Origin: Octopus sinensis
Taxonomy: Eukaryota
Direction of reading: 5' to 3'
Assembly (NCBI RefSeq): GCF_006345805.1
Contig: NC_043000.1
Location: 104,284,001-104,348,000 of the forward strand
Length of the DNA: 64,000 nucleotides
The position numbers and the translations under genes are program-made. A model generated the notes under the pieces. That model saw nothing but the letters and a program-made list of their open reading frames with translations, was not told the DNA's origin and ran no database searches. Shown piece by piece: positions 5,053-64,000 of this stretch. Positions within the stretch are counted from its first letter, which is position 1. The number at the start of each line of letters is the position of its first letter.

Positions 5053-5815
5053 GTATGTAAACTTTTGTTGTTCAGTCTTTGGTCTCTTATGGTACATTGG
5101 ACCTTGTAATCCAAGACTATCCAATGAAGACCAACTCTTTTTTTACAGGTATAGTGTGATTAAAAATCATCTAACCTGTTAACGTTATCCAGGCTGAAAA
5201 TTTGGTGCAAATGCTTGCAACTAAATAGGCTGTTGCTTAAAGTAGCCAAGGGCCATGTGGTGGTATTCATTAGAGTGACAAGGTTAATATATTGTTAATA
5301 CTAACATCGTGGTAGAAATGTCTTCACCTACTATGTGTAATGATTTTCTTCCTATGTCATTGCATGTTTCAGCATATTCGTTATAGAATGTCTATGTAAG
5401 ACTACATTGGCTTAATGTGTATTTTTAAGTGTCTTTTTCTCTTATAAGACACTTTCAAGTGTGATTTGAAAGAGATTTAGTTACTGTTTCTAACAAATGA
5501 ATGGACTATGCTGAGGCTCCCTCATTAGCTGGTCTATCTTAGGTTGGTATGTCTGTTCATGATTTCAGCACATACAGGCCAATGAAAAACCCTTACACTT
5601 GTATCTTAACTGTATAAAATATAAAAAGGTGCCTTCAGGTATGGTTATTTATAAGCAAATACACATTTAATGATCATCACCACCTATATATTATACAAAA
5701 CTTGATTATGAAATGTTGAATAATAATAGATATGGTTTTGTGGATGTTATTTTGCTCTCCTTTTTTCCTGTGTGTATATGTTTACTTATGTTAATTGATT
5801 CCTTTTAACTCACAG

Positions 5816-6154
5816 GGCAAGGTGATGGCTTCCATGTTCTATGAAGTCAGCACTCGGACCAGCTGTTCCTTTGGTGCCGCCATGCAAAGACTTGGTGGGT
5901 CAGTGATCACATTCAATGAAGCTACTTCATCAGTACAGAAGGGTGAAACTCTTGAAGACACAGTGCAGACCATGTCTGGTTATGCTGATGTTATTGTGTT
6001 ACGACATCCCAAGCCTGGTGCAGTTATGAAAGCTGCTCAGCACTGTCGCAAACCTGTGATCAATGCAGGAGATGGCACTGGAGAGCATCCTACTCAAGCA
6101 CTACTCGATGTTTTTACCATCCGAGAAGAAATTGGTACTGTCAATGGCCTTACT
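5816..6154 (+). CDS. CAD: CAD exon (ATCase carbamoyl-phosphate domain)
   Basis: cacAG / act|GTAAGT; [15 protein letters not shown]...SSVQKGE...VLRH...[10 protein letters not shown], with the STRT and HPTQ catalytic motifs intact. Confidence 0.98.
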
Positions 6155-7174
6155 GTAAGTATACTTTATATTGCAAATACCTTAATCCTGCTTTCTTTGT
6201 TGAAATGGTCAGATATTTTGGGAAGTTTCGTGCATATCCTGACAATTAATCTGACTTGTTTCAGGCATTGTACAAAAAAAAAAAATCATTATTGCCATGG
6301 CATAACAATCAAATAATGTTGTTTAATCCCAGATCAACCTTAATTGATCAAACCTATGATCGAAGGCATTCCTTATTGGCTAGCCAGTTCAATAGTAGCA
6401 ATAAATGTATTGCTTCATTGTATTAAATTCTGATGTGGGTGATGAAATATATAAGTAGTACCATTAACATACTATGGGTGATTCAGTTGACTGACTTTTC
6501 ATCACAGCAAAAATTGTGGGCTGTATTAATGTGAAGAGTCATTAGAATTGTGAGTAGGGGTGGAGGTGATGAAACAAGAGTCCTGGTTTAAATAGTTAAC
6601 CTGTTTTGTTGAATTTACCTGTAATTAGATTTTGAAACAGATTTGGTTAAGAGCCATTTGTTAAATTTTCCAAAAATCATAGTATAATGTTTTAATAAAT
6701 AAAATAAAATTAACTGTTTTATGAAACCAGTCTAAATGCACAATTATTTTAGAATTTAATTGAAACACATAAGGGATGTATTTTGGTTAGAAATGTAGTA
6801 ACAAAAGAGTTAAGTAATAAATAGTAATTGGTTATTGCTAGTTTGCTGTAGTTAGTTGTAGGGGAAATGTCTTCAAAGATAAAGAACACTGGTTATTGAA
6901 TGTGAACCCTTTGTCCTTTAGTCACCCAACCAATATCCCGACATTACTTTCTGAACTTCTTGATACTGTTCGTGTTGCCACACTTGCCACTTAGCTTCAG
7001 TGAAATTACCTGATAAGTATCTAACTGTTCATACTTCATGACTGACTAAATATCAAAAGTTTTTTTTGGGGGGAGGGGGGTGAAACCTGCTCACGTATGA
7101 TACCAAAAGCTGAATCATGCTGTTTCAGTAATCCTTGAATATGTTTTTTTTTTCTTCTTCCCACTTCATTTCAG

Positions 7175-12449: not shown

Positions 12450-14250
12450 TAAAATCCTGCAGTAGGTTTAATTAAGAAAATGTTTGAAGTTTGCCTTGTA
12501 GAATTGCTTCACATGAACTTTGTGATTAGTCTTCAGAGATGTTCTAACAGCATCAGTTCTATAAAAGTGAGAATGGACAAAAACAAACACTAACAGCAGA
12601 AATACTTGTTGGACATCATTCTCTTATACCCTCAAAAGTTATCCTTCAGCAGCACATATCAAGAAAACATTAAATCCTGTTAAACATCAGCATGCAACTG
12701 GATGTTGGATGCTACAATTGCTAGGTGTTATTGTCTCTTATTGTAAGCACACATCCCTAACTTTAGCAAAAAGGCTTAAGTATTTCCAGTAATTACAAAA
12801 CTATAAATTCCAAGCTAGATCTACAATGAAGTACTGATCCAATCTCTCTAAAAATAAATAAATAAATGGCCTTCCAACTGCCTAGAATAAAAATGCTTTA
12901 CTGTGGTTCTTTGGAGTTGGCTGGTGATAATCGTACCTGTATTAAGGCCCTATAGTAACCACTACCCAGAATGTCAGTCCTTTGGAATTCCTTTACACAC
13001 TAGTATCTACTGTAACCATTGACTTACAACTATTCAAGAACATAGCTGTGTTCATCTTCCTCCAGGCCAAACCAATGCAAAATATATTGTACTTTTTATC
13101 AAAATTTCAAGTTAGTGTTGCTGTAACTTTATGAAGATATTTCTCAAGTTAAAAGAGGATCTAACTAGATGAAATATTAAATTTAGCGAAGCAGCTACCC
13201 TGGTCACTAGTAATGACTGGTAACCAAAGTTGATCGACCAGTACTGAGGGCATATCATCTCTTACATTGTAGACTGCTCCCTAAGGAAATAAGATGCAAA
13301 AGGATAATCAGGCAATTGTTTATATACTAAGCAGCTACATGTACACAAAACAGTAGTCTCAACTCCATCAAGCAGCACCTTGAAAGCCACATCATTTTAA
13401 AATTAATAAGTAACAAAACATAGACTATAGAAAGCACTGCTTGCAAGCAGATTGCTGGATACATGCCTTATAACTTGGGACTTAGCAGATGCTTTGAAGG
13501 GGATTTTATGCACGTGTATCACAAGAAATGTAATGCTCACAGTGGTCATTACCTCTTTATGGTGTCCAGACTATAACCTAGATAAGGATACACTTTGATC
13601 CAGTAGTAGTCTTGAAAAGGAAGAGACCCACCCATTGGATTATGCTGAAGATATGCAATGCCTGATAGAAGTGTCTTGGAGTGTAATAGATGGTAGTTAA
13701 GTTAGTTTTAGGTTGCATATAATGAATGCTCAACAATTCTTAATTCAAGACCAATTTATTTGTGTGGTAAAATAAAATTCTGGTAATTGTTCACAACAAA
13801 GTTTACACTCTGGAAAAACAATTATGTAGCTCTTGCAAAAGGCTCTGTAATTAAACTGCCATGGTGAGAAAATATACATACTGGGTTCATGTCAGCAAAC
13901 TGTAGCGGCATGTCTAGGTTGAGTGAGAGTTATAATAATGACTGTTAAAAGCAGCAAAATTAATGTTATTTCCTTATGGAGAGAAGTTGTTGGTTGGCTG
14001 GAAACAAGGTGCTAGAGCATGGAATGTGTTCCTTCTGTGTACAACTAAGTGCACTCACAGTATGCAGATAAACTTCAACTTCGGACTTTTGCCATTCTTG
14101 TGGTGGTGGTGGTGGTGGGGTTCTGATGAACAGGAAAAGATTAAAAAAATTCTGGCTGTTAGTGAACTGGGAAGAAAAGGATCCTCTTGACATTGCTGAG
14201 CAGATTTAACTAATTTGAGGAAAATGAAGAAAGGTAAGCTCTTAGTCAAT
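12450..14250 (+). mobile_element. Heavily decayed non-LTR retrotransposon (RT remnants)
   Basis: Broken-frame traces resembling RT motifs: DLADA at about 13485 and PLDYAEDM (YADD-like) at about 13630. No long ORF; boundaries approximate. Confidence 0.35.
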
Positions 14251-27561: not shown

Positions 27562-27720
27562 GGCATACTTCATTTATTTTGAATATATTTCCCATTTTCA
27601 TAATTTTTTAAAGAAATCAGGCGTCATTTATTTGCAGAGGTGCGCTGCGAAAGAAGTGCCAAGAACCAATTATATATATAATGTCCTTATGTACACTCGT
27701 ACTTGCATATATACTCACAA

Positions 27721-27757
<37 letters not shown>

Positions 27758-27799
27758 AGTATATATGCAAGTACGAGTGTACATAAGGACATTATATAT

Positions 27800-29250: not shown

Positions 29251-31401
29251 CACACATCTATTCACAATCTGCATGAGTGCCGATATACGTAACATCTGAG
29301 AGAAGGCGGAATGCCGAAATTATCAATCGCCCACCATAGTATAGTAGTAGTAACAGCAAAATGGCTTTCTAGAACCATCTTACAACCATTATTTTAAAGT
29401 CCAACAGTTGTTATAAATGTATATAGAGACTTATTACAAGATCAGTATCATTTTATCGACACAAGAAATATGTAAACTAACGTAGAAAACCAACAGTATT
29501 TAGTCCGACACCAAGCATTCCTATAGACAAGCGTCGTAAATTATCTAGTGCTCTATAAACCGTAATTAGTTCGGATCTGTATGTTACGAATAAACATCGT
29601 AACTACGATTCTACAAAAAATTAAAATTTTCTTCCATAGAGGTAGATTTTAGCTCCTCCACCATTTATGATTATACAGTGCCTCATTCTTTTTTGGTTGT
29701 GCTTTTAAACAACGTAGATTCTAATTCTTCAAAAAAATATGCGTCACATAAATCCGAAAAAAAAAAAATTCGAAAACCAACACTGGGTGGGGGACCGAAA
29801 TCTCCCTCCCCCACTTTTTTCTTCAGTACCGATATTTCCGATGCTGGAAACAAGCATCTAAAGAAATCACAGCTTTTGGAATAATAGACCACTTACGACG
29901 CTATTCCATAGAAATACCCAGCAGTGTTTCCAGAACACTAAAACAAAAGAAAAAAGTTAACACTTCTCTACGATCTGGAGAAGAGAAACTTCTGGAAAGA
30001 TTCTAGTAGACCAGACTTAGAATGCAGTCGCCATTATCACTAATGAGAAAAGCATGAAAGTCACAATCGTATCCGAAATACCTACACGTGTGTGTGTGTA
30101 TAGACACACACACACACACTATTAAGATTAAACCCACCCACGTACTAATTGCTTCTGTTAAAAGAAGGCCAGCATTCCGATAGTGGTTAGGAATGTGCGA
30201 GAACTTTGCCAGAATAATGCAAACTGTTGTCGAGGAATGCTGTTATATATATATATATTGTAAGCTAAAGACAGAAGCCTAATAATATGCAAACAGTTGG
30301 TAGTTATTTTCTCAAGTATCGGGAAGCATTGTACTTTGCGTGTATTCATATATATATATATATAGATAGATAGATAGACAGATGAGACAGGAAGAAAGAA
30401 CCGTTAAGATATTTACAGAATGTTATCTTTTCAGTTATGTAACTATCGCTACTTCGGCCAGTTTTCAAACATGAATTAACATAAGTATTATGTACACACA
30501 TTGCATTGTCTCAAATACAACATAGAATATATATACTCGTGACTATGAAGAAACAAATATTTAATAAAAAGATTTTAAGACAATATAATTTAGGACAAAA
30601 ATGACCGACAGATTCCATATCGAGATGAATAAGCACTTAGAAAGCAAGGCATACAAGAAAACTGTAGTGGTCCAAATGTAGGCATTGCTTCCATTTACCA
30701 GTAATGGTTACAAACAGAGGTTCGAGAGTGGGGCACTTCCTTTCCAGGCAACCATGAAATAGAAGTGATTTTCCCTGTCTGAAGTAGGAGTTTTCATTCA
30801 AAATTAAAACTGAATGATAGATGGTGGACAGTGCCGGCCTCGACATGCTAGAAACGGCAGTCAAATCTTTTCAAAATCACGTCTTGCCATTTTAAAACCA
30901 GACAGGACAATGCAGACCTATTTATACGTATAATGTAACAGTTTCACTTTTCTTGAGATTTTACCTCCGTAATTTATAAGCTTCCACGTTCTATTCATGA
31001 AAAATATTCTGTAATTTTTTTTTAGTCCTTCATAGCTTTGCTGTTCTATAATATAAAATTAATTCAATTTGGATGCAAGCATTTATCCAAAACTTTTCTT
31101 CATTTATTAAAAATTCTCATTGAGCATTATTACTATTGCCATCAGCCATTTGTACTTGCGAAACTGAAAAGGGTACGTTATACTCCAAGATTGCGCAATA
31201 TAATCCTAAATACAAAAGGTCTGCATAACTGAATGGTCACAATGGGACTGCATTTGAAACACGTCAGCTTTAAAAAAAAACTTTAAAGACTTAAAAATCG
31301 GGCAATCCTATTGTTTATTTTTTTTTTTTTGCCTAAGGACAAAGTTTTGGACATTAAGTAATAATAATTTAAGAAAAAAAACGAGCTCTTGACTGACTCA
31401 C

Positions 31402-32199
31402 CTCTCTCAATGATATTTTAGCTTTATACCGTATATCATTTCCATCACGCGTGAAGACAGGATGCCGTTTGTCTCTGATGACAAACACAACATCTGCAGG
31501 TATATTATAAGGGGTTTGGTCTCCTTCTTTTGGAAATGTGATCTTCGTACCGGCTTTCCAACCGGGTTTGATATCTACTGTTAAGATTTTCTCTTCTCTG
31601 ACTTGTTTGTTCGACTGGACCATTATCGTTCGTGTGATTTTCATTTTCTTCGTGCAACCCGTGCAGATATCCTCAAGACTCACAGGTAGATCCTTGACAA
31701 TCGGTTTGTCTTGTTCCTTTTGTCGCCGGAACGACGGTCCACCCATATTAAAGCCATGTCTACCGAAGTGCGAGAATGGTTCATCTACATCCATATCATC
31801 GCCAACAAAACCGCCAGATTGGTGTTGCGATCTTTGATCACCTGGGAATGAACTAAACATAAACGAATTGAACGGGCCTTCATCCCCGAAAAACATCCTG
31901 AACGTTTCGTGCGGGTCACAGTGGAATGAGTAAGAGAAGTTTGCACCTTGTTCCCCACCCATACCACCGGGAACATTGCCCCTAAGTCCTTCTTCTCCAT
32001 AAGAATCGAATACTTTCCTTTTTTCTTTGTCGGACAGGATTTCATATGCTTCGGCTACCTCTTTGAACTTTTCTTCGGCTCCAGGAGATTTGTTTTTGTC
32101 CGGATGGTATTTCAGAGCCATTTTCCGATAGGCTTTCCTGATGTCATCTTCCGTTGCATTTTTATTGAGACCTAAGATTTTGTAATAATCTTTCCCCAT
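31402..32199 (-). CDS. DNAJB: DnaJ homolog subfamily B (DNAJB4/5-like) first coding exon: J domain, G/F region, CTD-I
   Basis: [10 protein letters not shown]...YHPDKNK...[11 protein letters not shown]...DDMDVDEPF...VSLEDI...KKMKITR...[12 protein letters not shown]; donor gag|GTGAGT at 31401. The exact vertebrate orthologue cannot be assigned. Confidence 0.97.
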
Positions 32200-35310: not shown

Positions 35311-36154
35311 CTAGCAGAATTGCCCGGCGTTGCTCGGGGCTGAATTGCTTGAAAGTACTGTTAATGATTGCACTGAATTATGATGATTATTCAGGCAAAT
35401 ATTGATATAAGTTTACGGTGGGAGATAAGGACTTAACGATCAAACGTGTGCCATTGCATTGTTTTGGGGAACCAAATTTCTGATGAGCATTATAGGGGCA
35501 CCAACTTTAAGTTTGAGAAAGTGTGGTGGTAGTCCGGGGTGCTCAAAGGAATTGAGTACCTCTATTGGATAGTTGATGACGTCCTCTGGGTCAGGAGTTG
35601 TATCGATAGACTGATATACATAGACTTCCCCAGGAATGAGTTTTAGCATTTCATCATTAATATGGTGAACAGTTTTATTCCTCGGGGCCAGTATAGCCTT
35701 TTTGCCAATCCAATCCATATTCTGATAATTAGCTTGTAGATCTGGGAACACTGCATCTCTGAGATCAGAAGGCGTCTTAACAATGGTACAAATGGAATCG
35801 ATGGCAATATTACCATTTTCATCCCCTGGTATTTTGCCTTCGCCAAGTGCAAGGAGGGTGTGAGGAAATGCTGCTGATGTGATATTACGTCGCATATGAA
35901 CACGCATATTGGTGTGAAGTTTGAGAGTTACTTCCCTTTATTAAAAAATATGCATTAAAATGGAAAAAAATGATGGTAAATTATTTGTAAAATCGTAGAC
36001 TCATCGTAGACGCACGCTAATACCCAGAAGGGCTCGATATGAATCACGACTATAAGATACCCGGTTTTGGTTAAACTGCATCGCAAAATGTGGGAGTAAT
36101 TAGGAATCTAAATCGGAGTAGACAGACACACAACCTTTCTTTTGTATATAAATA
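35311..36154 (-). mobile_element. Internally deleted Helitron carrying a PIF1-helicase fragment
   Basis: 3' CTAG|T with hairpin cccg-N8-cggg; ORF 35907-35440 ...AILAPRN..V..IN...YQSID...LNS...GLPPH.L.LKVGAPIMLIRNL (RepHel helicase); 5' end shared with the 4640-4936 copy. Confidence 0.9.
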
Positions 36155-38057: not shown

Positions 38058-40254
38058 CCGGGGTTTTCCGAAAATCTGCCCAGGGCTGTTAAACGGAATA
38101 TTCTATTTTACAAAACTATTTTTTTTGCTTAAATAACCGCCCACCTAAAATAAGCCTCCATGGGTAGTAACATGGAAGAAAAATATTTCACCTACGAAAA
38201 ACAAAGGTATTCTCAAAAACCATACTTATTTTATACAATTCCATTGAACTTCTCTCGTTTCAGTTATCAGATACATAGACATAAAGAAGCTGAAACAGCC
38301 TTAAAAGAAGTAGCATATTAAAAAATATTCTGAAGTTAACAATGGATCTATTAGGAAATATTGAAAATTAAACTGTTGCAAACATGAATAGAAGCCTCGT
38401 ATGAACAAATAATGTACTTGGCATTTATGGTAGAATAATAACCGAATATAATAAATCTTAGAGCGAGTTATAAACAGTAGCTGCAACACATCGTGACGTA
38501 TATTTGCCATTTAAATATGGCTAACCCCTAAGGGTGGATGCTACTGTAGTTTGTAGCCCCAAGAGGACACCTCCTCCAGCTGGCTTTAGGCACACTCGTT
38601 TAATAGCACAGAAAGTGTGTCTAAAGCCAGCTGGAGGAGGTGTCTTCCTGGGGCTACAAACTACAGTAGCATCCACCCTTAGGGTTTAGCCATATTTAAA
38701 TGGCAAATATACGTCACAATAACAGAATAGTTTCAAGCTAAATATCACGAATTTCTTCATTTGATGCTTGGCCATAACTCACATCAGAGCAAATTTCACT
38801 TACTTGTATCTCATCTTCTTCAATTTTGTCATTATGTGCATCTAGCACATTTACCTCAAGGCCAGGCAAAACATCCTGTAAGAGTGAGTTTGAGGCTTAG
38901 TTCTACAGTCTGTCCACGATGAGCAATTCCACAACATTCAAAAGCACGCTTTATAGTTACTTTATTTCAAGTGGCAACAGCTTAGGTCACAAAGTTCACT
39001 ATCTCTCGATAAGAAAGTTTTTTGCGATATCCTTTATTTGTATACTCCTTTTTGTCATTTGAAAACCAAATTCTTCCATTCAGCACGAAGGTCTTTCTTG
39101 AAAGGACCAATAATTGATACATCTAACGGCTGCAAGTAAGATGTTGTTTTAGGAGGTATAAGTTTGAGAATTGTATTCCTACGTTTGAACACTTCTAGGA
39201 GCTCTGTTTTCTTGTGCACTGAGCATTCATCCATGAATAACACTGAATTTTGAGCATGGAATAGTTGTGCTGTTCTCTGCCCGAACATTTTGTCAGCCCA
39301 CAGCTGCATGAGTTCATATGTGATCGATCCTTTGTTGGAGACTGTTAAATATTCTTTAGGACCTTGATTTTAGGCATGTTTTTTCAATCCTTTAAGGATA
39401 ATCATTGTTTTCAACACCTTTCCTGCAGCATTAACACACAACACAGCAGTAAATCGAGCTTTGGTAGCATCACAGTGGCTAGCATCTACATTTTTATTGC
39501 CAACAAAGTCTATGGATGTTGAACTCAACATGTCAACGTATACAAGTGTTTCATCCATATTATAAATCTGGTCAGCATCCTTATCTGCTGTTAATACTGG
39601 AATGCTATCTAGATAGTCACTGGCGATTTGTGCCTTTTCTCCAAGTGTTTTATTGTCTGCTTGACCAACATGTGTAATCTTTCTCACAGTCAGTTTATAC
39701 CATTTCATGAAATTGACCATCCAGTTATCAGAACATCTAAAGCTGTTCATTTCAAATCCGAATCTTTTTACCAATTCAAAAGTATATTCCCGTAAACGGC
39801 GATAATTTACAATTATACTGTTTGCACGTTGAACAACAATCCATTGAAAGAGTTCAATCTATCGATCTCTATGTGCTAGTCCTCTACCTCCACCAATTGA
39901 TCTGCGCCTCCTCTTGTCTGACATATTGATTAACTCAGTTTCTTTTGTACATCGATACCTAAGTCTCTTGACGCAGCAGATAAATTACCAGAATGTTTTT
40001 TACTCGTTTAATAGCACTCAATTTTTCACAAATAGTATATGATTGTCGAACAAGTTTTGATATATTTTCTTTCGACTCTATTATCGGGAATAAAAATCCT
40101 TTGAATTTATCTACAGACGTAGAGCAAATGAACGTCTCAACAGAATGCAAACAAGAATACTAACTCTGTTTCAACTTTTAACCACAAATAACCGCCCATC
40201 AAATAAACGCCCATGGGCAATCTAATGGATGGGCGGATTTTCGGAAAACCCCGG
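38058..40254 (-). mobile_element. pogo/Tigger-like transposon, frameshifted transposase
   Basis: TIR ccgggttttccgaaaat(c/t)tgccca / tgggcggattttcggaaaaccccgg with TA on the right; fragments RQSYTICEKL (HTH), QIYNMDET, LFMDECSVH, PPKTTSYLQPLDV (DDE_1). Confidence 0.88.
38493..38717. mobile_element. Near-perfect 225-bp palindrome (MITE-like) inside the pogo element
   Basis: 103-bp arms (38493-38595, 38615-38717), 19-nt loop, about 4 mismatches. Confidence 0.85.
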
Positions 40255-45469: not shown

Positions 45470-46320
45470 AGGTGGTTTCAAAGAATCATTGTTGTTACGG
45501 GCGTGTTAATGGACCTCTTTCTCAATAATGCTCCATACATAATAGTCCAACGGATTATGATCTGGAGAATTAGGAGGCCAAATGTTAGGGGTTGTGTGAT
45601 CTTGAAAATTTTCAGCTATCCATTCCTGTGTTGCTTGAGCCTTGTGTGATGGTGCAGAGTCTTGCTAAAACACATGGCTTTCCATTGTGTACATTGTCTA
45701 TCCAGAGCTTAACAATTGTTTCCAAGACCTCAATATAGGCAGCAGAGTTAACTCTAAGGCCTTTTGGAAAGAAGTAAGGAGGCATAACATGTCCTTCATT
45801 GCTGACAGCCCTTAAAACCATGACAGTTGCATGGAATTTTGTATGCATAACTCGTGGAACTTTAGAAGGGCCTGCACATAACCATCTGTCATTTCTTATG
45901 TTAACTTTTTGATCTTGGTAGTAGTTTTTCTCGTCTGAGAAAAACCAAATTAAATCTTCTTCTGCTGAATTTTTCAGTTGGTTTAAGGGCCTTTTAGTTC
46001 TGATGCAGTAATTTGTTTTTGCTTTTTCTGACATAAATTAGCCATTCCTCACCATACAAGACTTATATTTAATGTCTTCATTACTGGTTGTTCCTTCTGA
46101 CACACAGAGATCTTTTGCAATTGACTTCATGGATTTTCTTGGATTCTAATCTGTTGAACTTACTGGATGAATTCAGGTGTTCTGATGATTTCAGAGTGTT
46201 TAGAATGCTTTTTGCATTTTGATACTCATGATACGATTCCATTTTCGGTCTCTTACTTCTTAGAAACTTCATAGATGAAAGAACTGGTGACTTTTAAAAA
46301 TCGAGATATTTCTAAATTGC
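45470..46320 (-). mobile_element. Tc1/mariner (maT/DD37D-like) transposase remnant
   Basis: FFSDEK..QDQKVN.RNDRWL...HTKF.ATVMVL.AVSNEGHVMPP.FF..GLRVN. TIRs not resolved. Confidence 0.75.
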
Positions 46321-54374: not shown

Positions 54375-55827
54375 TTTTTAACGTCATTTTCAACAAAGGC
54401 CACTTAGATGCTGTAGATTCAAAGTATATAAGGATTTATGGGAAAGAATTTTTCTGAGGAGTGGGGAAAAGAGTTTCGGACAATTCACACAATCCAACTT
54501 TTCTCCCGCATAACCTTCAGGAAAATGGTTATATTTAAATGAAATTTTATACAAATACCTTTCAAACGGCATAGATTACGATTATAAAGAAATGTGTGGA
54601 GAAAATTTTTTCCGAAGGTGTGAGGAGAGGAGTTTCGGATTAGGATGACCAATTAAGTTGGAACTACACTGTTTTTTATTTCCTCACAGCCTTCGAAATG
54701 GTCGGGGGGAAGCATCTTTTTATGAAAAAAAGTTTTGAAAATTTTTTCACCTCCATTCTTCACCAGTCCATTCCAGACCGACTTTGGCCATTTTTTAAAA
54801 ATTAAAAACCTTCTAGCACATCCCAAACTACCCTCCGTTTTCACCTCTCAAATGTATTGATGTTTTTCAAATATTTTTCTCCTATTAAACATATTTTATG
54901 GAATGATGATGCCCAAGTTAACAAATGCATGGTCCATTGGTGGGATATAAGCAACAACAACAACAACAACAAAAAATTGTAATTTAAATTTTTACCCCCA
55001 CCTCAATCAAGCGAAGCTGTGTGTATGCGTAAGAAAAAAAAAGGATCTTCTGACCATCAAATTGAAAAGATCCGAAAGAACATTTCCTAACAGAAGAGTG
55101 TGCTATTAATATGAATTATCGTTTACATACCTCTTTTTTAAAAATCACTATGGATAAATACCAGTAATAACCTTCTCAGTCTCTACAATATTTTAAATTA
55201 TAAGCAGAAACAATGACAGGCAAGAAGTGGGGGTTGCAAAAAATTCTTTTTTTTTTATAGCATTTAAAGCGAGGTGGGGGGTTGTCTGAGATGTGTTAGA
55301 AACAACAGCCAAATCTCCTTTAAATAGCTTTTCCTCTGAAAATATTAATTTTTTTAATGTTTTTTTTTATCGAAAAGACTCCTCCCATGGCTTTTAAGTG
55401 CAAAATAGCTGGCCAAAATCAATCCGGAGTGGGATGATGAGGATGAGGGTGGGGGAATTGTAAAAAAAAAAAAAAAAATTCAAAACTTTTTTTTTCATAA
55501 AAAGATATTCCCCCACCCATCATTTCGAATGGTGTGGTTAAATAAAAAATGGGGGAAAAAGTTCCAACCTATTTGGTCTTCCTGATCCGAAACTCATCTC
55601 CTCATCCCCTCGGAAAAAAATTCCTCACAAATTTCTTTATAATTGTAATCTATGCCGTTTGAAAGGTATTTGTATAAAATTTCATTAAAAGATAACCGTT
55701 TTCCTGAAAGTTATGAGCCAGAGCGTGTGAATTTTCTTCTCACCCTTTCGGAAAAATTATTTCCAATAAATAGCTATATACTCTGAATCTACAGCATCTA
55801 AGTAGTATTTGTTTTAAATGTTAAAAA
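54375..55827. mobile_element. Foldback element with about 430-bp diverged arms
   Basis: 54375-54810 mirrors 55390-55827 (e.g. ttttatacaaatacctttcaaacggcatagattac / gtaatctatgccgtttgaaaggtatttgtataaaa). Confidence 0.75.
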
Positions 55828-57254
55828 GTATCCGTTTTCCTGGACGTTATGAGGCAAAATAGTTGTGGGGGAGAGACTACACATCTAGTTATGCCAAGAT
55901 TTTTTGTAAATACGTTGGTCAAGCACTGACCAATAATTTCTTTTATTTATTTGGCGATGTTTCGCTTGTCGTAACACACGTTTCCGTCGATTGTCGATTT
56001 CCGTAAAAAATGTAAACACTGAATCGTCCATACATACATACACACATACATAGATACATACACACACACATACATACACACACACACACATAGATACATA
56101 CACATACACATACATGCAGACATACATATACACATACACCGAGTAAAAAATTTCAGTTATCTCTCTCTTTCACACATTACTCTCTCTGTCTCTTCGCACA
56201 CACTAACAGAAGCACTTCACTTACACAACATACTGTCTGTCTCCCACACCCCATCAAACACACACACGGGGACTTCAAAGAGAAATTTCCTCGTCATAAA
56301 ATCGCTTCCTCTTAGTCTCTTTCGCTCTCATTACTTATGTAAAAAAATAAAAGTTTTTTTCGCCGCAAGGAAAATATCTTCCTCTTACACTAAAAAAACT
56401 GACACTAATGTTTGAAAAAGTGAAACTGGTACGTTAAACTCCAATAACGTCTAGTCCTAAAAACACAGGCGCGAAAAAATAACATTAAAAAGAAACATTA
56501 TGGGTTCAGAAGAATGTTCTCGATTAGAAGTCTTTTCGACCAGAGCTGATCCGGGTTACAAAACAAAACACGTCTTTTAAGTTTAACGAAATTGTTTTCC
56601 TAACAAGAGTTCTCTCCCTTCTATAATATAAGTTCTCGAAATTCTGAGCGGTTCCGGCTGAACGACAATATTAAATTTCTAAAAATGTATTTCTCTTACT
56701 ATTTCTTAAATATGTGTATAAACATTCTTCTTTAGTTCCACTAAATTAAATTGACATTTCGCTCATGACCTATGTCACCGGCGATCGAATGTTAAAACAT
56801 AAGTTTATCAATTTCTGTAAAGTACGTTAACAAAATCATAAATACTTATATATATATATGTAGTTTTAATTTATTCTTAGCAGTGTCAAGCGGTTATTCT
56901 TTATACATTTTCCTCTTGTAATTAAAGGCTAATATTTTGTTAGAACTTATAAACAACAGGAAGTTAGCCCCTTTTAACTTCCTCTTCTCTCCCCTTCATC
57001 CCACTTAATGGTCTCAAAAAATGGGTTGGTGGTGATTAATTTCTGTAAATGATTATGAAAGTGTTCTTTAATAACAGTAAAATATTGTTGCATAAGACAA
57101 AACTATTGGAAATAAAAATTTATAATTGAAAAAATATTAATATTTTAGCAAACAATTGATGGCAATTAATAATAAACAAAAAGCTGATAGCTAACGCCAG
57201 TGAATAATACATTTTAGTATAAGGCTAAATATATGTCAATTTCACTGTATCGGT

Positions 57255-57395
57255 AGCTTTGCGCAGAGGCGGTACCATGGCCAATGAGGTAAATCCGAGG
57301 CGTGGTTATTGCTAGTTGAAAACTATTCCCAATACCCCGCGTATGGCATCCCACGAGGGTGCTGTGCGCAATTTTTGCGCACCTCTACGGAGGTG
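57255..57395 (+). ncRNA. U4: U4 spliceosomal snRNA, variant A (141 nt)
   Basis: AGCTTTGCGCAGAGGCG...CCAATGAGG...CCGAGGCG...TTATTGCTAGTTGAAAACT..TCCCAATACCCCGC matches the U4 5' domain; 13-bp stem-loop; Sm site AATTTTTG (57370-57377); terminal CACCTC-TACG-GAGGTG. Confidence 0.96.
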
Positions 57396-57400
57396 TAGAA

Positions 57401-57417
57401 ATCAATGTAATAATAGA
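57401..57417 (+). promoter_or_regulatory. Candidate snRNA 3' box
   Basis: ATCAATgtAAtAATAGA, 5 nt after U4-A; 14/17 identical to the motif 4 nt after U4-B. Confidence 0.6.
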
Positions 57418-58938
57418 TTGTAATTTTATTTGTAAGTTGCAGAGATGATAACCCAGGTAAACCTATAACTAAGTTGTTCGTTGCTTTTGAATTTGTTTAC
57501 TAGTGTCCCTGCTAATTTACGCATGGTAGATTATGCAGTATTCGCTGTTATATCTAGCACATCGATTAACCACACTGAGGGCCTCTCGATTGTTAAAAAT
57601 GGAATATCATTATTTATTACAATCCAGTGGATCAGTACAATACAGATAAATACATTTCATTAACTGGTAACACACTCCCGTATTTTTATTTCGACTTGCA
57701 GATTATTGCAATACTGATTAATTCGCCTATCCGCAGGAGAAATGCTTTTTAACCTTCATCGGGATTTGAATACGGCGTAAGGTATAGTGTTCGAAGCTTT
57801 ATCAATTCCATCATTCACTGCTGGCTCTCTGGACAATAAGACCAGTCATCTAATTTTGGGTATACTTTACTTTAGCGACTGAAAAACAATTGTCACCCAC
57901 AATTATGACCCTACTATCGATCTATTGCATTTCAATGTTTTAGTGTTAGGGGTGGGGGTAAGGGTATCTTTTTTTCTTCACAAATGTAAATAAACCCAAC
58001 CTGTTTCTTAAACGAAGGACATATTCATAGGGCACAGAATTTTTTTACCTCAATAGACGTCATTGATTGGTTGAAATTGAAGAAAAAACAACAACAAATA
58101 TCTTACAAACCATTGAATCTTCTCAATAAAGCCAAGAGAAAAAGATGTTTTATAAACACATTCAACCAGTATACGAAGTTTAAAAGTGTTTAGTTACGTG
58201 GAAATTATTTTAAAAAACTGCCGTTCAAACTGAAAAGATCCGACATGTCTTTTACCAAATGCTCGTCATTTATTAAGTGTTTCAACCATGATTAGGGATT
58301 CAAATGTAACCATCTAGTCTTTTGTAAGAGTCAACAGTGACCTTTCCATCTTTTTTTTTTTTTTTAAGCCAAATAGGACTAACCTTAACGACGAAAATAT
58401 ATGTATTGAAGATAAATGAAGCTGTTATTTCTAGCATGTTGAACAGCAAGAGTACATAAACATTAACACACATAAGTTTACCACTTGTAATTGTTTTTAG
58501 CTCCAGGTCGGTTCTGATCCAGCAACCTCATGATCCAAATACACGACTACATTATCCAATGCACCTTTTAAATAACAGGGTGTGACATGCGGGAGAATTT
58601 GACTATGTTCTGAATTATTACAATTGGAACGTAAAAACCAGAAATGTAAAAAGGTGGGACTCGCTTTACTAAATAATTCATTACTATTAGAGAACATATT
58701 CATGTGAAGAAAATGTTTCGGAAAATGAAAATATTATTTAATACTATTAATGATAAGTCAATTTTTAAAACAGTTAAATAATGAAATAGGTTGCCTTTCG
58801 TTCAGGGACGTAGAAGTAACGGAAAACGAAAAGAAAGTGTGACGCCGAGATTGTATAAAATTAAACATGGGTATCCCAAAGCGAAACGAATTTGTAAATA
58901 CTTGAAAGTAGTTTTATTAAGCATCAGTTTAATACATC

Positions 58939-58982
<44 letters not shown>

Positions 58983-58983
58983 A

Positions 58984-59077
<94 letters not shown>

Positions 59078-59222
59078 CATACATATATACATACACACAC
59101 AGAGATTTATATGGTCGCCATCCTTAAACCCATTCCAATACAATGGTAAAGGACTAAATAAATAAATAAATGAATGAATGCTGAATAGGAAGGGGGTTAC
59201 CCCTTCTCTGTCAGTCTGTCTG

Positions 59223-59313
<91 letters not shown>

Positions 59314-59599
59314 CCATTGTCATGGAACCTCACCCCAAAAAACAAAAACAATGTTCTCTTCTAAACAACCCGCCACGAAAACAAAAAAAGTTTTATATAA
59401 ATGAACAAGCTGTTAGTACATTCACAAATTTTTATTTGATAAGCTCGAGAAAGGAACGAAAGCGTTAATAATAACGAACTTTTTTCTCAATATTCAATTT
59501 CTGTAAGTCACACCTAACACACTCTATCTCTATATATATACATACATATATATACGTATAGATGTATGTACATATACGTATGTATATATAATTTATATA

Positions 59600-59790
59600 T
59601 ACTTTTACTTGTTTCAGTCATTTGACTGCGGCCATGCTGGAGCACCGTCTTTAGTCGAGCAAATCGCCCACAGGACGTATGCTTTGTAAGCCTAGTACTT
59701 TTTCTATCGGTCTTTTTTGCCGAACCGCTAAGTTACGGGGACGCAAACACACCAGCATCAGTTGTCAAGCGATGCTGGAGAGACAAACAC
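59600..59790 (-). mobile_element. SINE-derived repeat
   Basis: ttttacttgtttcagtcatttgactgcggccatgctggagcaccg...gccgaaccgctaagttacgggg; reverse of 62940-63120. Confidence 0.8.
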
Positions 59791-60272
59791 ACATTTATGT
59801 TGTTTGTAGCTGTTTTGTTAAGAAGCCTGCATCTCAAACGTGGTCTCAGATTTAACCCCACTGCGCGGCATATTGTGCAAGCGTCTTTTGATTTATATAT
59901 TAGTGTGAGTATGTGTCTATCTGAATGTGTAGCTGCCGTTTGACTGCCGGTGCTAGTTTGTTTACGCCCCGGTCCCGCGAAAGAGATCGGACTTGCCCGA
60001 TCCTATCAAACCGTCCATCCCAGCCCTGCAAACACACACACACAAGGTAGGGAGGGAGAGTGTCTCCCTTGTCAGCCGTTAGAAAAGTGCTCTTACGTGG
60101 TTATGAGTTGTTTGATGATATCAAGGCCATTAGACTGACGCATATTTCTTCTGTTTATGTCTGCACAAAGCTATCGGCAGCTCATTCAGAATTTAATACC
60201 CAGTCCTCGTCAAAACTCACACACAAGCACGTATAAGCGCCCACACACGATCACCAAAAGGCTATATTAATG

Positions 60273-60289
60273 TCTATTCTTTAATTGAT
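60273..60289 (-). promoter_or_regulatory. Candidate snRNA 3' box
   Basis: Minus strand ATCAATtaAAgAATAGA, 4 nt after U4-B. Confidence 0.6.
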
Positions 60290-60293
60290 ATTG

Positions 60294-60433
60294 CACCTCC
60301 TCAGAGGTGAGTAAAAATTGCGTTTGCTATCTATTATGGATAGCAACGCGGGGTATTGGGAATAGTTTTCAACTAGCAATAACCACGCCTCGGATTTACC
60401 TCATTGGCCATGGTACCGCCTCTGCGCAAAGCT
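60294..60433 (-). ncRNA. U4: U4 spliceosomal snRNA, variant B (140 nt)
   Basis: nt 1-88 identical to variant A; then the GCGTTGCTATC-loop-GATAGCAAACGC stem, Sm-like AATTTTTAC and terminal CACCTC-TGAG-GAGGTG. Confidence 0.92.
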
Positions 60434-60851
60434 ACCGAAACTGACGCCATTTTTCAACTTAACAGAAAATCAACCCTATACAATCACTGATATTGCTTTT
60501 CACTTTATTGTTATTCATTAATTCCCGTGAATAGTAGCAATAGATTTCTTTAGTGGCTGTGCATCGGTTGTATATACTTAATTGTTTAACTAATACAAGA
60601 ATGCCAAATATGTAGCTTTTATATCATATTTCTGTTTTCATATGTTTGGTATATGACTTCATACAGAAGTGACCTTTGTTTGATGATATCAAGGCCATTA
60701 GACTGACGTTTATTTTTGTTTGTGCCTGCACAAAGCTATCGGCAGCTCATCCAGAATTTGTGCCCCGGTCCTCGACAAAACTCATACACTGACAAACAGA
60801 CATACACACGCATGCATGCATGTACGTACACACGCACACACACACACACAC

Positions 60852-62510
60852 TATTTCTTTATTACCCACTAGGGGCGACACAGAGAAATACATCACAACA
60901 CATTGAGGACATAGAACAATCTAAAATTATGAGAAATTAATTTTAAAATGAAAATGATAAAATGAAAGCGGTGCTGAACGGCCCCATCCGCCAGCACCAC
61001 TTACCTGTCCTTCATCACCCATTTCCAATCACAATTCCTTCCTTTCCCATCACACTCTTCGTTTTCCTTTCATACTTCTCTATCTCTTCATCCTGCATTG
61101 TCACTTTCATCACTTTTATACCCTTTTCCTCACACAACATCACCATTGTGTCCATAATTTCATCTTTCAACACCGCGCAACTCCCGTCTTCACGTTCATG
61201 CCATAAATCTTTATGTATTATTCTCTTTGAGTTCTGGGTGTCCTTCTTCCTCACAACACATAAAAAATAGTGCCTGGGACTTCGTTCGTTCTGTGTGTCT
61301 GCATTTGTTTTTGTTTTTCTTGTAGGCGGGGAGTGGGTGGAATCACTGTTTGCAGAGGAAGGATGGGACTCAGAGGGTGCGGGTGGTGTTGGGGTGGGTT
61401 GGGGTTTCATACTGTTTGCTTTTTTCTTTCTTTTTCTTTTTTTTCTCCCTTCTTCCCACTCTTGCTGGTTCTCCTCTTCTTCAGTTGCTTCCCTTTCTGT
61501 TTGGTTCTCCCTTTCCTTAGTGTCTTCCTTTTTTGGGGGTTCCGTTTCCTTTTCCTTTGGTGGGGGTGGGCAGTTGGCTCTTATGTGGCCTCTCTGGCCA
61601 CACTTATAACATCGTGGGGCTCTGCTCTCCACCCACACTCTCATAATAATGTTCCCTGTTCTTATATTTTCTGTCAACCTTTCTATTGTTTCCGCTTCTG
61701 TCTGTACATTCATGTCCAAGGTGGCACCTCTCACGCCTTCGTATTTCATAGTGGCGTGGAGGATGTCCACCTTTTCCTCGTTTCCCTTAATCACCGCTGC
61801 CGTTATGTATTCACCCTCTAGGTGTGGGGGTATTCCCTCCACCCTAATTCTTGTGGTTCTTCTATTTAGATACGAGGGCAGTAAGTATATCTTCTCCGTT
61901 TTTACCACCTTGGTTGCTATTTTTCTGGCGACGTTCTCACTTCTATATTGAACCGTTACAGTTCCATACTCCATTCCTCTTGTCAGGTAAACAATTTCCT
62001 CTCCAGTCTGTTTCAATGCCTCTTCAATAGCTTCCATATTTACTATTTCAATCCTTCTTCCTCCATTCACGTACACTCTATATTTGATGGTTCTACGGTT
62101 GAACCACTCGCCACGCTTTGCTGGAGGTGACAGCTCGACTTCGCCGTTCTCCTCCTCTTTCATAAAATCCTGGAAGCCTGGTAATTTAGCCAGGTCCACC
62201 TCTTTTTCTTTCGGCCTCATCACTCCTGCATACGTCTTTTCCAGCCTTCTATCCATTTCTTCCACTGCTCTTTCCAACTCCTCCTCCTCAGATGACGATA
62301 ATTCCGACAAACTTTCAAATAAATTCTTCCCGAGGGAGAGGCGGTTCATAATCCTTTGTCTGTCTCACCTCAGACAGACAACGGCCGCCAGAACAGACGC
62401 CGTGTGACGCGAAACCGTATCAACAATTATTCAAATAACAAATATGGCAACTTACGATAGAAATACTCCAGCTCCTCAAAACACGTGCGACCTGAACAAA
62501 ACTTGAGCTA
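60852..62510 (-). mobile_element. ORF1-only (HAL1-like) non-LTR retroposon in a (CA)n tract
   Basis: About 160-nt 5' UTR, intact ORF1, about 163-nt 3' UTR ending gtaataaagaaatag-(tg)n; flanks acacgca(c/t)acacacac are TSD-like; no ORF2. Confidence 0.75.
61015..62349 (-). CDS. Tx1/L1-type ORF1 (gag-like) protein, 444 aa, single CCHC zinc knuckle
   Basis: RRM-like TTRIRVEGIPPHL region; RCYKCGQRGHIRANC (C-X2-C-X4-H-X4-C); low-complexity K/E/P-rich C-terminal half; no stops. Confidence 0.85.
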   Translation of the reverse strand: MNRLSLGKNLFESLSELSSSEEEELERAVEEMDRRLEKTYAGVMRPKEKEVDLAKLPGFQDFMKEEENGEVELSPPAKRGEWFNRRTIKYRVYVNGGRRIEIVNMEAIEEALKQTGEEIVYLTRGMEYGTVTVQYRSENVARKIATKVVKTEKIYLLPSYLNRRTTRIRVEGIPPHLEGEYITAAVIKGNEEKVDILHATMKYEGVRGATLDMNVQTEAETIERLTENIRTGNIIMRVWVESRAPRCYKCGQRGHIRANCPPPPKEKETEPPKKEDTKERENQTEREATEEEENQQEWEEGRKKRKRKKKANSMKPQPTPTPPAPSESHPSSANSDSTHSPPTRKTKTNADTQNERSPRHYFLCVVRKKDTQNSKRIIHKDLWHEREDGSCAVLKDEIMDTMVMLCEEKGIKVMKVTMQDEEIEKYERKTKSVMGKEGIVIGNG

Positions 62511-62939
62511 ACACGCATACACACACTCAATCTCCCACGTAATTTCTGTTTATTCCCGCACAAAGCCATCGGCAGCTAATCCAGAATTTAATTCCCGGCC
62601 CAGGACAAAACTCATAGGCACAAACACTCATACATACGCATGCACGACCGAACCTATGCACATACGTCCACATACGCGTATATACACGGACACACACACA
62701 CATGCGCACCCACGTGATTTCGATGCCTTCTCTTTCTTAAATTTTTAACTAGCTGTCGTTCCTATGCATCATTGCCAAAAAATGACGACGATATGCTTTT
62801 GGGGTAGTTGTTGCTCAATAGAGTGTTACTGAGCTTAATCAATTCTTCGTGGTGGGTATCACGATCGCTACTTATATTCATTGCTCGATGAATATATATA
62901 TATATGTATGTGTGTGTGTGTTTGTGTGTCTGTGTTTGT

Positions 62940-63122
62940 CCCCCTAGCATTGCTTGACAATGCTGGTGTGTTTACGTCCCCGTCACCTAGCGGTTCGGCA
63001 AAAGAGACCGATAGAATAAGTACTGGGCTTACAAAGAATAAGTCCCGGGGTCAATTTGCTCGACTAAAGGCGGTGCTCCAGCATGGCCGCAGTCAAATGA
63101 CTGAAACAAGTAAAAGAGTAAA
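62940..63122 (+). mobile_element. SINE-derived repeat
   Basis: ttgcttgacaatgctggtgtgtttacgtcccc...cagcatggccgcagtcaaatgactgaaacaagtaaaagagtaaa. Confidence 0.8.
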
Positions 63123-64000
63123 AAGAGTATACCGTTTCAACATACTGATTCATTTTTAAATTGCAATTTTTAGTGTTTAGCTATAAAAGAAAATTCAAAT
63201 GTCCGAAGAACAGTTTATTTCTGGATTGGAGTATCATCGCATTCAACTATGTAATGTTAATTCGGACATTAGTGTAAATTAGCTTTAGCACTTTGCATTT
63301 TACCACATAATATGCTGACTTGGACAGAGTATTCAACTATATGAATTTTAAGAAATCAGATGAGCATAGAAAGTTTGAACACTAAGAAAATTTGAACATC
63401 TCACATGCACATTACCGAAGTGACAATTGTCGTTATGATCATAAACGTCTTAGCAAACTGTTGAAAAAAACAAAAACAAAAAAAAAACAGGGCCCATAGA
63501 TGTTTATAAATCACGAGAAACTGCTCTTTGGACATCAAAAGAAAAGGAACAGAAATTGTGTGAAAGCAATTATGTTAATTCGATTTCAATTTAATTACAA
63601 TAGTTCCTTTTTTTATTTTAAACAAATATTTTGATATGTATACCCCTTTATGTATTTTTTGCTTAGCTGCTATTCTTTGACACCTATCACTGTTATGTTT
63701 TAATATTTAGCTATCGAAATAGTAAGTTATAAAATTTTGTATTGGCAGTCGTTCCTATGCATCATGCCAAAAAAATGACGACGATACGCACTAAATGGTC
63801 AATGGGACTCTAAGTTAAGGGAATCATTTAAACAGAGAACGATTGCAATAGGTTTTCCGACTAAAAGGCTATATTAATGTCTATTCTTTAATTGATATTG
63901 CACCATCTAACATGCACTTCACCGCAGTGAAGTGAAAATTGTTGTTATGATTATAAACATCTTAGCAAACTGTTGAAGAAAATTGGATCCATTGGTGTTT

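Follow-up and report, generated by a model that had tools for sequence, protein, structure and literature searches.

Human, chicken and fly already provide examples of linked variants of the U4 snRNA gene. The human genes RNU4-1 and RNU4-2 lie contiguously on chromosome 12 and, like the two Octopus sinensis genes described here (variants A and B), form a closely linked pair of intact U4 genes whose functional core is identical and whose potential for expression is apparently unequal (PMC11338827, PMC13083247). The human genes differ at 4 nt (97.2% identity), whereas the octopus genes show, after nt 88, one indel and 19 differences in 52 aligned positions. The 3′ stem-loop of human U4 tolerates homozygous variants, and in RNU4-2 this element (n.85-117) contains seven of the 14 UK Biobank variants compared and none of the 35 disease variants (PMC13083247).

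In vertebrates more broadly, Lu & Matera (2014, PMC4291461) describe two groups of U4 paralogs, along with chicken U4B/U4X and U4 switching in Xenopus; the variants are distinguished in the second (3′) stem-loop, as are the octopus genes, and developmental switching is reported (citing Korf 1988 and Lund & Dahlberg 1987). The vertebrate groups are separated by two to three nucleotide differences that are conserved in human, mouse, rat and chicken, whereas for octopus conservation is seen for the A-type only. Another protostome, Drosophila, likewise has a small divergent U4 family (U4:38AB, U4:39B and U4:25F), in which one gene takes over as the dominant form in the course of development and another is probably a pseudogene (PMC4291461). 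Both the chicken and the Drosophila precedent had been named in an earlier reading of this DNA (the ‘original prediction’), and both are documented in that source. The fly paralogs differ already within nt 1-47, whereas no difference separates the octopus genes over nt 1-88. Human U4-59P, -82P and -91P resemble the octopus pair in that the 5′ part is identical and divergence then sets in abruptly; those human sequences, however, diverge completely after nt 68 and lack the Sm site and stem-loops (PMC8457000). Oligo(A) is frequent among them and promoters are mostly missing (PMC8457000), whereas octopus variant B keeps the Sm site, the stem-loops and a promoter-like motif. In the literature searched we found no description of U4 variants, or of snRNA promoters, from cephalopods or molluscs, and the octopus pair is a newly documented case.

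Arrangement of the two genes

The window analysed here, meaning the whole stretch of DNA that was examined, spans 64 kb of Octopus sinensis (CM016862.1:104,284,001-104,348,000) and was scanned with Rfam cmscan for matches to the U4 model RF00015. The assignment to this cephalopod is borne out by 100% identity to GCA_006345805.1 over 28,459 bp. Exactly two U4 matches were found, each covering model positions 1-138 of 138, with a gathering score of 46: variant A at 57255-57393 on the forward strand (114.8 bits) and variant B at 60296-60433 on the reverse strand (119.6 bits). The original prediction had proposed two full-length U4 genes placed tail to tail, with a covariance scan as a check, and on both counts the scan bears it out. 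The predicted gene for variant A occupies 57255-57395 (+; 141 nt), as judged from the full-length match, its fold and a positional ortholog in Argonauta; that for variant B occupies 60294-60433 (−; 140 nt), as judged from the full-length match, its fold and counts of preserved base pairs. Both genes are intact, and they are convergent, 2.9 kb apart.

No further U4 copy was present in the 64 kb at the gathering score, at a permissive E<=1 or in a 20-mer search allowing 3 mismatches, and no other snRNA gene was found in the window. The spacer between the gene tails (57396-60293; 2.9 kb) consists of (TA)n, (TCTA)n and (CATA)n simple repeats and dispersed repeat fragments, and neither an RNA family nor a tRNA was found within it. 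A 45-nt copy of the 3′ flank of B at 63860-63904 was considered as a third U4 and rejected, since what lies upstream of this copy is neither U4 nor a match to any Rfam family. The 444-aa gag-like ORF that adjoins B had no homolog at 1e-10 in a protein search, and exact database matches were found neither for this ORF nor for both antisense U4 ORFs or two flanking ORFs.

A U4 gene is present at the syntenic position in Argonauta hians (L012:659-796). The DnaJB ortholog lies 9.2 kb downstream of it, and the gene is in colinear order with two further conserved blocks. Its 3′ domain is A-type, so that the comparison of orthologous loci that the original prediction had suggested recovered this form, in an Argonauta locus that extends 658 nt past the U4 gene. 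The DnaJB-anchored loci of O. sinensis and O. vulgaris end 15 kb short of the U4 pair, which is read in one assembly. A metagenome scan with a 35-nt U4 core pattern returned five invertebrate U4 loci, none of them from a cephalopod, that were used for a cross-taxon profile only; a protein-database search with a spurious antisense ORF running through U4 gave three matches (L006-L009), again with no cephalopod among them.

We believe, with a probability of roughly 0.7, that A and B are two U4 paralogs encoded at the DNA level, of which A is the conserved copy and B is probably functional, in an ordinary U4 snRNP. Each would have its own snRNA-type promoter block and 3′ box.

A shared 5′ domain

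The 5′ ends of the two genes form an inverted repeat of 96 nt (57247-57342 / 60346-60441; 99% identity). Within it, 93 consecutive nucleotides, comprising TCGGT and U4 nt 1-88, are the same in both genes, and A and B first differ at nt 89, which agrees with the 93-nt identity and its abrupt end inside the 3′ stem-loop that had been described at the outset. The upstream TCGGT is part of a TCGKT motif that is present in Argonauta as well. All the known contact sites of U4 for U6, Snu13 and the Sm ring are identical between the two variants; Prp31, too, is assigned to the k-turn domain. The 5′ domain contains, in A and B alike, the U6-pairing stems II and I and a 5′ stem-loop with a k-turn, the internal loop of which (AAUGA / GA) lies in GCCAAUGAGG...CCGAGGC, a sequence identical in A, B and Argonauta. 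When U4 nt 1-70 were cofolded with a metazoan U6 (not the octopus's own), the resulting structure (-43.3 kcal/mol) contained stems II and I on either side of the 5′ stem-loop. In human U4 the k-turn is the Snu13/15.5K site (PMC13083247).

Given the divergence of the 3′ half, the absence of any difference in 88 nt has a probability of ∼4e-18, and the 5′ domain of B is therefore not drifting. The Argonauta gene is identical to A and B over nt 1-88 and likewise diverges from nt 89. This identity is no local peculiarity of the octopus pair: among 10 invertebrate U4s, nt 1-86 are nearly invariant and seven of the ten pairs of the 3′ stem-loop change on both sides. Since the boundary at nt 88 is also seen between orthologs, purifying selection suffices as an explanation, without recourse to gene conversion; the ‘conversion or purifying selection’ originally offered for the 5′ domain thus leans towards its second half. 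What keeps nt 1-88 identical would be strong purifying selection on the U6-pairing domain with its k-turn; conversion from A could also keep the 5′ domain of B identical.

Divergence of the 3′ stem-loop

Beyond nt 88 the two variants are 63% identical (nt 89-141). Folding confirmed the two stems originally proposed for this region, with one amendment. The 3′ stem-loop of A has a 13-bp stem with four G·U pairs and a 5-nt loop, while that of B has an 11-bp, all-Watson-Crick stem with a 7-nt loop, and carries a single bulged A; the Rfam consensus, too, has a bulge. The Sm site, AAUUUUU (the heptad as defined in PMC4756616), is identical in both genes, in the context CGC-AAUUUUU followed by a 6-bp hairpin. 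That terminal hairpin, CACCUC-N4-GAGGUG, folds in both as had been claimed, with different loops (UACG in A, UGAG in B).

Placed in register, the 3′ stems have five of ten pairs unchanged, three with a change on one side and two with double compensatory changes, and each of the three one-sided changes converts a G·U pair in A to a Watson-Crick pair in B. The description of this domain as structure-preserving therefore holds, while ‘rewritten’ is too strong for a stem in which half of the pairs are unchanged. Seven substitutions fall among 14 stem nucleotides and all seven pairs involved remain paired, an outcome with a probability of ∼0.002-0.011 under random substitution. Across the molecule, none of the 26 modelled pairs departs from standard pairing in A, B or Argonauta, and variation is limited to the 3′ stem-loop. 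We envisage a stem-loop in B whose sequence would be free to change while its helix is kept, the route being steps from G·U to Watson-Crick pairs together with the two double compensatory changes.

The perfect stem of B could also have been made in one step, by a replication template switch in which the complement of the 5′ arm was copied into the 3′ arm, a mechanism that is documented for RNA hairpins (PMC8794818). Five of the seven stem substitutions between A and B are in the 3′ arm, and the arms of B form a perfect 8-bp inverted repeat without G·U, where A has four such pairs. At two pairs, however, the series runs C-G (Argonauta), U-G (A) and U-A (B), the classic pattern of stepwise change by way of a wobble pair. 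We regard a template switch as unlikely; it concerns the mechanism only.

Over nt 89-141 the Argonauta gene is 83% identical to A and 65% identical to B. Private changes in the 3′ half number ∼14 for B as compared to ∼2-5 for A or Argonauta, which could reflect relaxed constraint; B might be an older duplicate, or a redundant copy evolving faster. An attempt to date the duplication by informative sites gave no order of duplication and speciation: set beside outgroups, the three sites that A and B have in common but Argonauta does not appear to be ancestral.

The sudden divergence of the octopus pair after an identical 5′ part superficially recalls the human truncated class (PMC8457000), which would make B a 3′-truncated U4 retropseudogene fused to unrelated sequence. 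Variant B nevertheless retains, after nt 88, a 3′ half homologous to that of A, at the 63% identity given above, with a corresponding stem-loop, Sm site and terminal hairpin; it also has promoter and 3′-box motifs and no oligo(A). If the pair were instead an assembly artefact, one would have to account for flanks that differ, for opposite orientations and for a syntenic U4 in an independent genome. Explanations of this type, whether retropseudogene or artefact, appear to us extremely improbable.

Flanking motifs and the status of variant B

In SNAPc-type (Pol II) snRNA genes a proximal sequence element is placed some 50-60 nt before the start, and a 3′ box follows closely after the mature 3′ end. 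Upstream of both octopus genes, at equal distance from +1, lie 45-nt blocks that are identical at 30 of 45 positions, a value reached by none of 2000 shuffles. The putative proximal sequence element of A (57159-57203, +; -96 to -52) contains AATTAAT and ends in CAGTGA at -52, and that of B (60484-60528, −; -95 to -51) is recognised by the similarity of its block to A; within the window this motif occurs at these two sites only. Argonauta shares both cores, AATTAAT and CAGTGA, and there too CAGTGA ends at -52. A TATA-like TAAATAT in A (57226-57232, +; -29 to -23), presumably functional as such, is found at the same position in Argonauta, and its counterpart in B is degenerate (TAAGTTG at -28 to -22). 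The promoter of B, having no TAAATAT, may be weaker or differently regulated.

Downstream, 25-nt blocks of A and B are identical at 18 of 25 positions (reached by 8 of 2000 shuffles). They contain 3′-box-like motifs, ATCAATGTAATAATAGA in A (57401-57417, +; 6-22 nt past the predicted 3′ end) and ATCAATTAAAGAATAGA in B (60273-60289, −; 5-21 nt past the predicted 3′ end), such that ATCAATnnAAnAATAGA is found at +5/6 to +21/22 in both genes; Argonauta has TCAATTAAGATCAGA at the equivalent place. The vertebrate 3′ box has the consensus GTTTN0-3AAARNNAGA, and the octopus candidate resembles this vertebrate sequence in its 3′ half only. The flanks of the two genes had been described as otherwise dissimilar, which holds outside the upstream and downstream blocks but not within them. 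We take these blocks to be candidates for an snRNA promoter and 3′ box.

The loss in B of a TAAATAT conserved at -29 to -23, and its excess of private 3′-half changes (about five times more than in A), would both fit a silent or barely expressed pseudogene whose 5′ 93 nt were matched to A by short-tract gene conversion between inverted copies, as would the orphan copy of its 3′ flank at 63860-63904, a sign of local rearrangement. Yet B outscores A against the U4 model, retains the Sm heptad, the terminal hairpin, the PSE-like block and the 3′ box, and has an all-Watson-Crick 3′ stem that is improbable by chance (∼0.002-0.011, as above); the boundary at nt 88, moreover, also separates orthologs, between which conversion is impossible. 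We find a pseudogene distinctly unlikely. Most likely B is transcribed and assembled into an ordinary U4 snRNP, and we infer that both genes are expressed and would be equivalent in function.

At the other extreme, A and B could be specialised isoforms that are kept apart by selection, regulated by tissue or stage, and sorted into different snRNPs via the 3′ stem-loop. Both genes are intact with a helix preserved through compensatory change, their promoters differ at the -25 element, and, if change were clock-like, the distance of B would place the duplication before the Octopus-Argonauta split; there is also the human precedent, in which RNU4-2 is dominant in brain and RNU4-1 may not fully compensate (PMC11338827, PMC13083247). 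Against this, the differences between A and B fall in the least constrained domain of U4, no difference touches the known binding sites for U6, Snu13 or the Sm ring, and the long branch of B is equally well explained by relaxed constraint. Specialisation of this kind is doubtful. A stricter form of it, in which the B-type would be an ancient isoform older than the Octopus-Argonauta split, kept throughout the cephalopods together with its own 3′ stem-loop and a different promoter, and with expression confined to certain tissues or stages (for example neural versus non-neural), is more doubtful still; if true, it would constitute an independent protostome parallel to the two vertebrate U4 groups, which are also distinguished in the second stem-loop. 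The step from this pair to ‘two distinct U4 snRNPs’, or to two kinds of spliceosome, is not supported, because the differences sit in a freely varying domain of U4 and the Sm site is identical. The pair comprises ordinary snRNA gene variants that differ only where U4 tolerates change in all animals.

Variant snRNA genes are drawing renewed attention, since the behaviour of human RNU4-2 in brain and in disease is not that of RNU4-1. The octopus pair mainly confirms known rules, with the U6- and Snu13-binding half frozen (88 of 88 nucleotides in the paralogs and Argonauta) and the 3′ stem-loop changing in a compensatory manner, and it brings into view, for the first time, octopod candidates for snRNA promoter and 3′-box motifs. 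As a clean invertebrate pair in which the core is identical and the stem-loop has diverged yet still folds, it could serve as a natural experiment on the role of the U4 3′ stem-loop.

Two convergent U4 genes

When the whole window was scanned with Rfam cmscan, precisely two hits passed the gathering score. Each is to U4 (RF00015) and spans model positions 1–138 of 138: variant A at 57255–57393 on the forward strand (114.8 bits) and variant B at 60296–60433 on the reverse strand (119.6 bits). These are the full-length matches that the original prediction had anticipated. Neither a permissive scan (E ≤ 1) nor 20-mer searches allowing up to 3 mismatches found further U4 copies in the window. The genes are convergent, their tails being separated by a 2.9-kb simple-repeat spacer, and a repeat finder identified inverted arms of 96 nt with 99% complementarity at 57247–57342 and 60346–60441. 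By direct reading, A and B are identical over TCGGT and U4 nt 1–88 and first diverge at nt 89. Covariance scanning, repeat finding and folding agree with the earlier description of a tail-to-tail U4 pair with an identical 5′ domain and two different 3′ stems; A and B are two real U4 genes, and that description was accurate.

When cofolded with metazoan U6, U4 nt 1–70 (common to A and B) formed stem II, the 5′ stem-loop and stem I, and the k-turn loop AAUGA/GA is present in the 5′ stem-loop of both variants. The sequence AAUUUUU, which is by definition the U4 Sm site (PMC4756616), is intact at all seven nucleotides in A and B. Folding placed CGC-AAUUUUU, followed by the hairpin CACCUC-N4-GAGGUG, 3′ of the stem-loop in both. 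Variant B is probably functional.

Variant B is bracketed by directly oriented repeat copies (60108–60224 and 60676–60789, forward strand; spacing 565–568 nt, 86–95% alike), with a third copy 1.8 kb further on (62544–62619, forward strand); the repeat is either dispersed or locally duplicated. It contains GATAGCTTTGTGCAGA, whose resemblance to the U4 5′ end (GTAGCTTTGCGCAGA) may be due to chance. A 444-aa ORF with a gag-like CCHC zinc knuckle (61015–62349, reverse strand) lies 0.6 kb upstream of B; a search of 5.8 billion proteins gave no homolog at E ≤ 1e-10, and no exact record of the ORF was found. Long inverted repeats near the pair (59587–59758 / 62960–63131, 172 nt, 89%; nested repeats at 54385–54665 / 55560–55820, 67–109 nt, 84–88%) resemble mobile-element copies or termini. 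Elsewhere in the window, a palindromic AT-rich hairpin at 27677–27796 (both strands) scored 70–77 bits against several miRNA families, below their gathering scores, and in all probability represents a simple inverted repeat, not a miRNA. Candidate features recognized by eye were an aspartate carbamoyltransferase-like exon (5795–6316, forward strand) and, on the reverse strand, apparent fragments of Helitron/PIF1-like (35440–35907), pogo/Tigger-like (39370–39774) and mariner-like (45612–46034) transposase ORFs.

The 3′ stem-loop and its Argonauta counterpart

In folding, the 3′ stem of variant A comprises 13 bp (GCGUAUGGCAUCC/GGGUGCUGUGCGC), four of them G·U, and closes a 5-nt loop; that of variant B comprises 11 bp, all Watson-Crick (GCGUUGCUAUC/GAUAGCAAaCGC), is interrupted by a single bulged A and closes a 7-nt loop. 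In the alignment, one indel and two substitutions separate the 5′ arms, and the 3′ arm holds most of the changes.

A DnaJB4-like gene has its first coding exon in a 276-aa ORF at 31369–32199 on the reverse strand, which matches a protein listed under Octopus vulgaris at 100% identity. The locus of that protein in GCA_006345805.1 (CM016862.1) corresponds to window positions 13741–42199 (100% over 28,459 bp), a region in which the O. vulgaris assembly is 98–99% identical. The window accordingly corresponds to CM016862.1:104,284,001–104,348,000, from Octopus sinensis, and its attribution to a cephalopod holds. The DnaJB ortholog of Argonauta hians (88% protein identity), taken with 10 kb of flank, has a full-length U4 gene at L012:659–796 on the reverse strand (114.2 bits). 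This gene, oriented like variant A, is situated 9.2 kb upstream of DnaJB, and two further small conserved blocks, with counterparts at window positions 48.7–48.9 kb, are colinear with it; we therefore regard the gene as the positional ortholog of A. All three cephalopod genes are identical at 88/88 positions over nt 1–88; over nt 89–141, A and Argonauta agree at 43/52 positions (83%), A and B at 33/52 (63%), and Argonauta and B at 33/51 (65%). The Argonauta Sm site (L012:680–686, reverse strand) reads UAUUUUU, the first position being A in both octopus genes and in all eight other invertebrate U4 genes; either the change is tolerated or the main Argonauta U4 is another copy.

Ten column pairs of the 3′ stem are common to these three genes. 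Five are invariant, three differ between A and B on one side (G·U in A, Watson-Crick in B), and two differ on both sides (G-C/C-G and C-G/U-A). Two pairs display the series C-G, U-G, U-A across the three genes, which is the classic route via a wobble intermediate. Under random substitution (7 changes among 14 stem nucleotides), pairing survived at all 7 pairs in just 0.2–1.1% of trials, indicating that the helix is under selection. The 3′ domain had been described as rewritten but structure-preserving: pairing is indeed preserved, but with 5 of 10 pairs unchanged the stem has been modified, not replaced.

Flanking motifs

The flanks, previously considered otherwise dissimilar, in fact share two blocks. 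An upstream block of 45 nt, ending in CAGTGA at −52 (A) and −51 (B), is identical at 30/45 positions, a value reached by 0 of 2000 shuffles; a 25-nt block just beyond the 3′ end is identical at 18/25, equalled by 8 of 2000. The upstream motif occurs at only two sites in the 64 kb, both at the U4 genes, and the downstream motif ATCAATnnAAnAATAGA at both genes and one orphan site. From their positions we infer that these blocks are a candidate proximal sequence element and a candidate 3′ box. The Argonauta gene has TCGTT before +1, CAGTGA ending at −52 and TCAATTAAGATCAGA downstream; its start-proximal TCGTT indicates that the five identical upstream nucleotides of A and B are part of a conserved motif. 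It also shares TAAATAT at −29 to −23 exactly with variant A (57226–57232), whereas the counterpart in B is degenerate (TAAGTTG, 60455–60461), a difference that could provide a basis for unequal expression.

The stretch from the last 4 nt of variant B through the 3′-box-like motif recurs, as a 45-nt copy with 98% identity, at 63860–63904 on the reverse strand. Upstream of this copy there is no U4 body; an unrelated 8-bp hairpin (CACUUCAC-UGCG-GUGAAGUG), which matched no Rfam family, follows AAUUUU. The copy may be the remnant of a rearranged B-type gene.

Selection, duplication and known U4 variants

With the 3′ half as diverged as it is, the absence of any difference in 88 nt has a probability of about 4e-18, implying active maintenance of the 5′ domain of B, whether through selection on a functioning gene or through conversion from A. 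The original prediction had allowed both for this domain. The same nt-88 boundary separates orthologs of different species, between which conversion is impossible, so purifying selection is sufficient and conversion is not needed to explain the boundary. On the Argonauta comparison, A is the conserved type, with B a derived or older type. Branch lengths among the three taxa were about 5 for A, 4 for Argonauta and 14 for B. At three sites A and B share a nucleotide that differs in Argonauta, and outgroups suggest that the shared state is ancestral; the duplication may therefore predate the species split, or B may simply evolve faster. The altered −25 element and long branch of B leave room for differential expression or decay.

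Linked U4 variants are already established: human RNU4-1 and RNU4-2, linked like octopus A and B, are contiguous, differ by 4 nt and are unequally expressed in brain (PMC11338827). Switching of U4 isoforms has been reported in Xenopus, chicken and Drosophila, and concerted evolution is general in snRNA families, making stable paralog groups rare (PMC4291461). One class of human U4 variants, generated by truncation and retrotransposition, diverges completely after nt 68 (PMC8457000); variant B falls outside this class because it retains a homologous 3′ half, Sm site, hairpins and flanking motifs. No description of cephalopod U4 variants was found in the literature covered. Among invertebrate metagenome contigs, two carry a U6 gene about 500–800 nt upstream of U4 on the same strand (L001:480–1217 and L005:342–1377); a further invertebrate contig has two identical U4 genes separated by 2.8 kb, and tRNA genes lie both in the interval and alongside the pair (L006:7154–10088).

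We aligned 10 U4 genes, two from the window and eight on other invertebrate contigs found by two indirect routes. Across them nt 1–86 are nearly invariant; the 3′ stem-loop has changed on both sides at 7 of 10 pairs, and 91% of its cells are paired. The corresponding human RNU4-2 stem-loop (n.85–117) harbors 7 of 14 UK Biobank variants and 0 of 35 disease variants (PMC13083247). The differences between A and B therefore fall in the single U4 domain whose sequence can vary freely, and the two match at every binding site of U6, Snu13 and the Sm ring. Taken alone, this pattern does not point to two kinds of U4 snRNP; under the general constraints on U4 it is expected of any pair of copies unless they are very recent.
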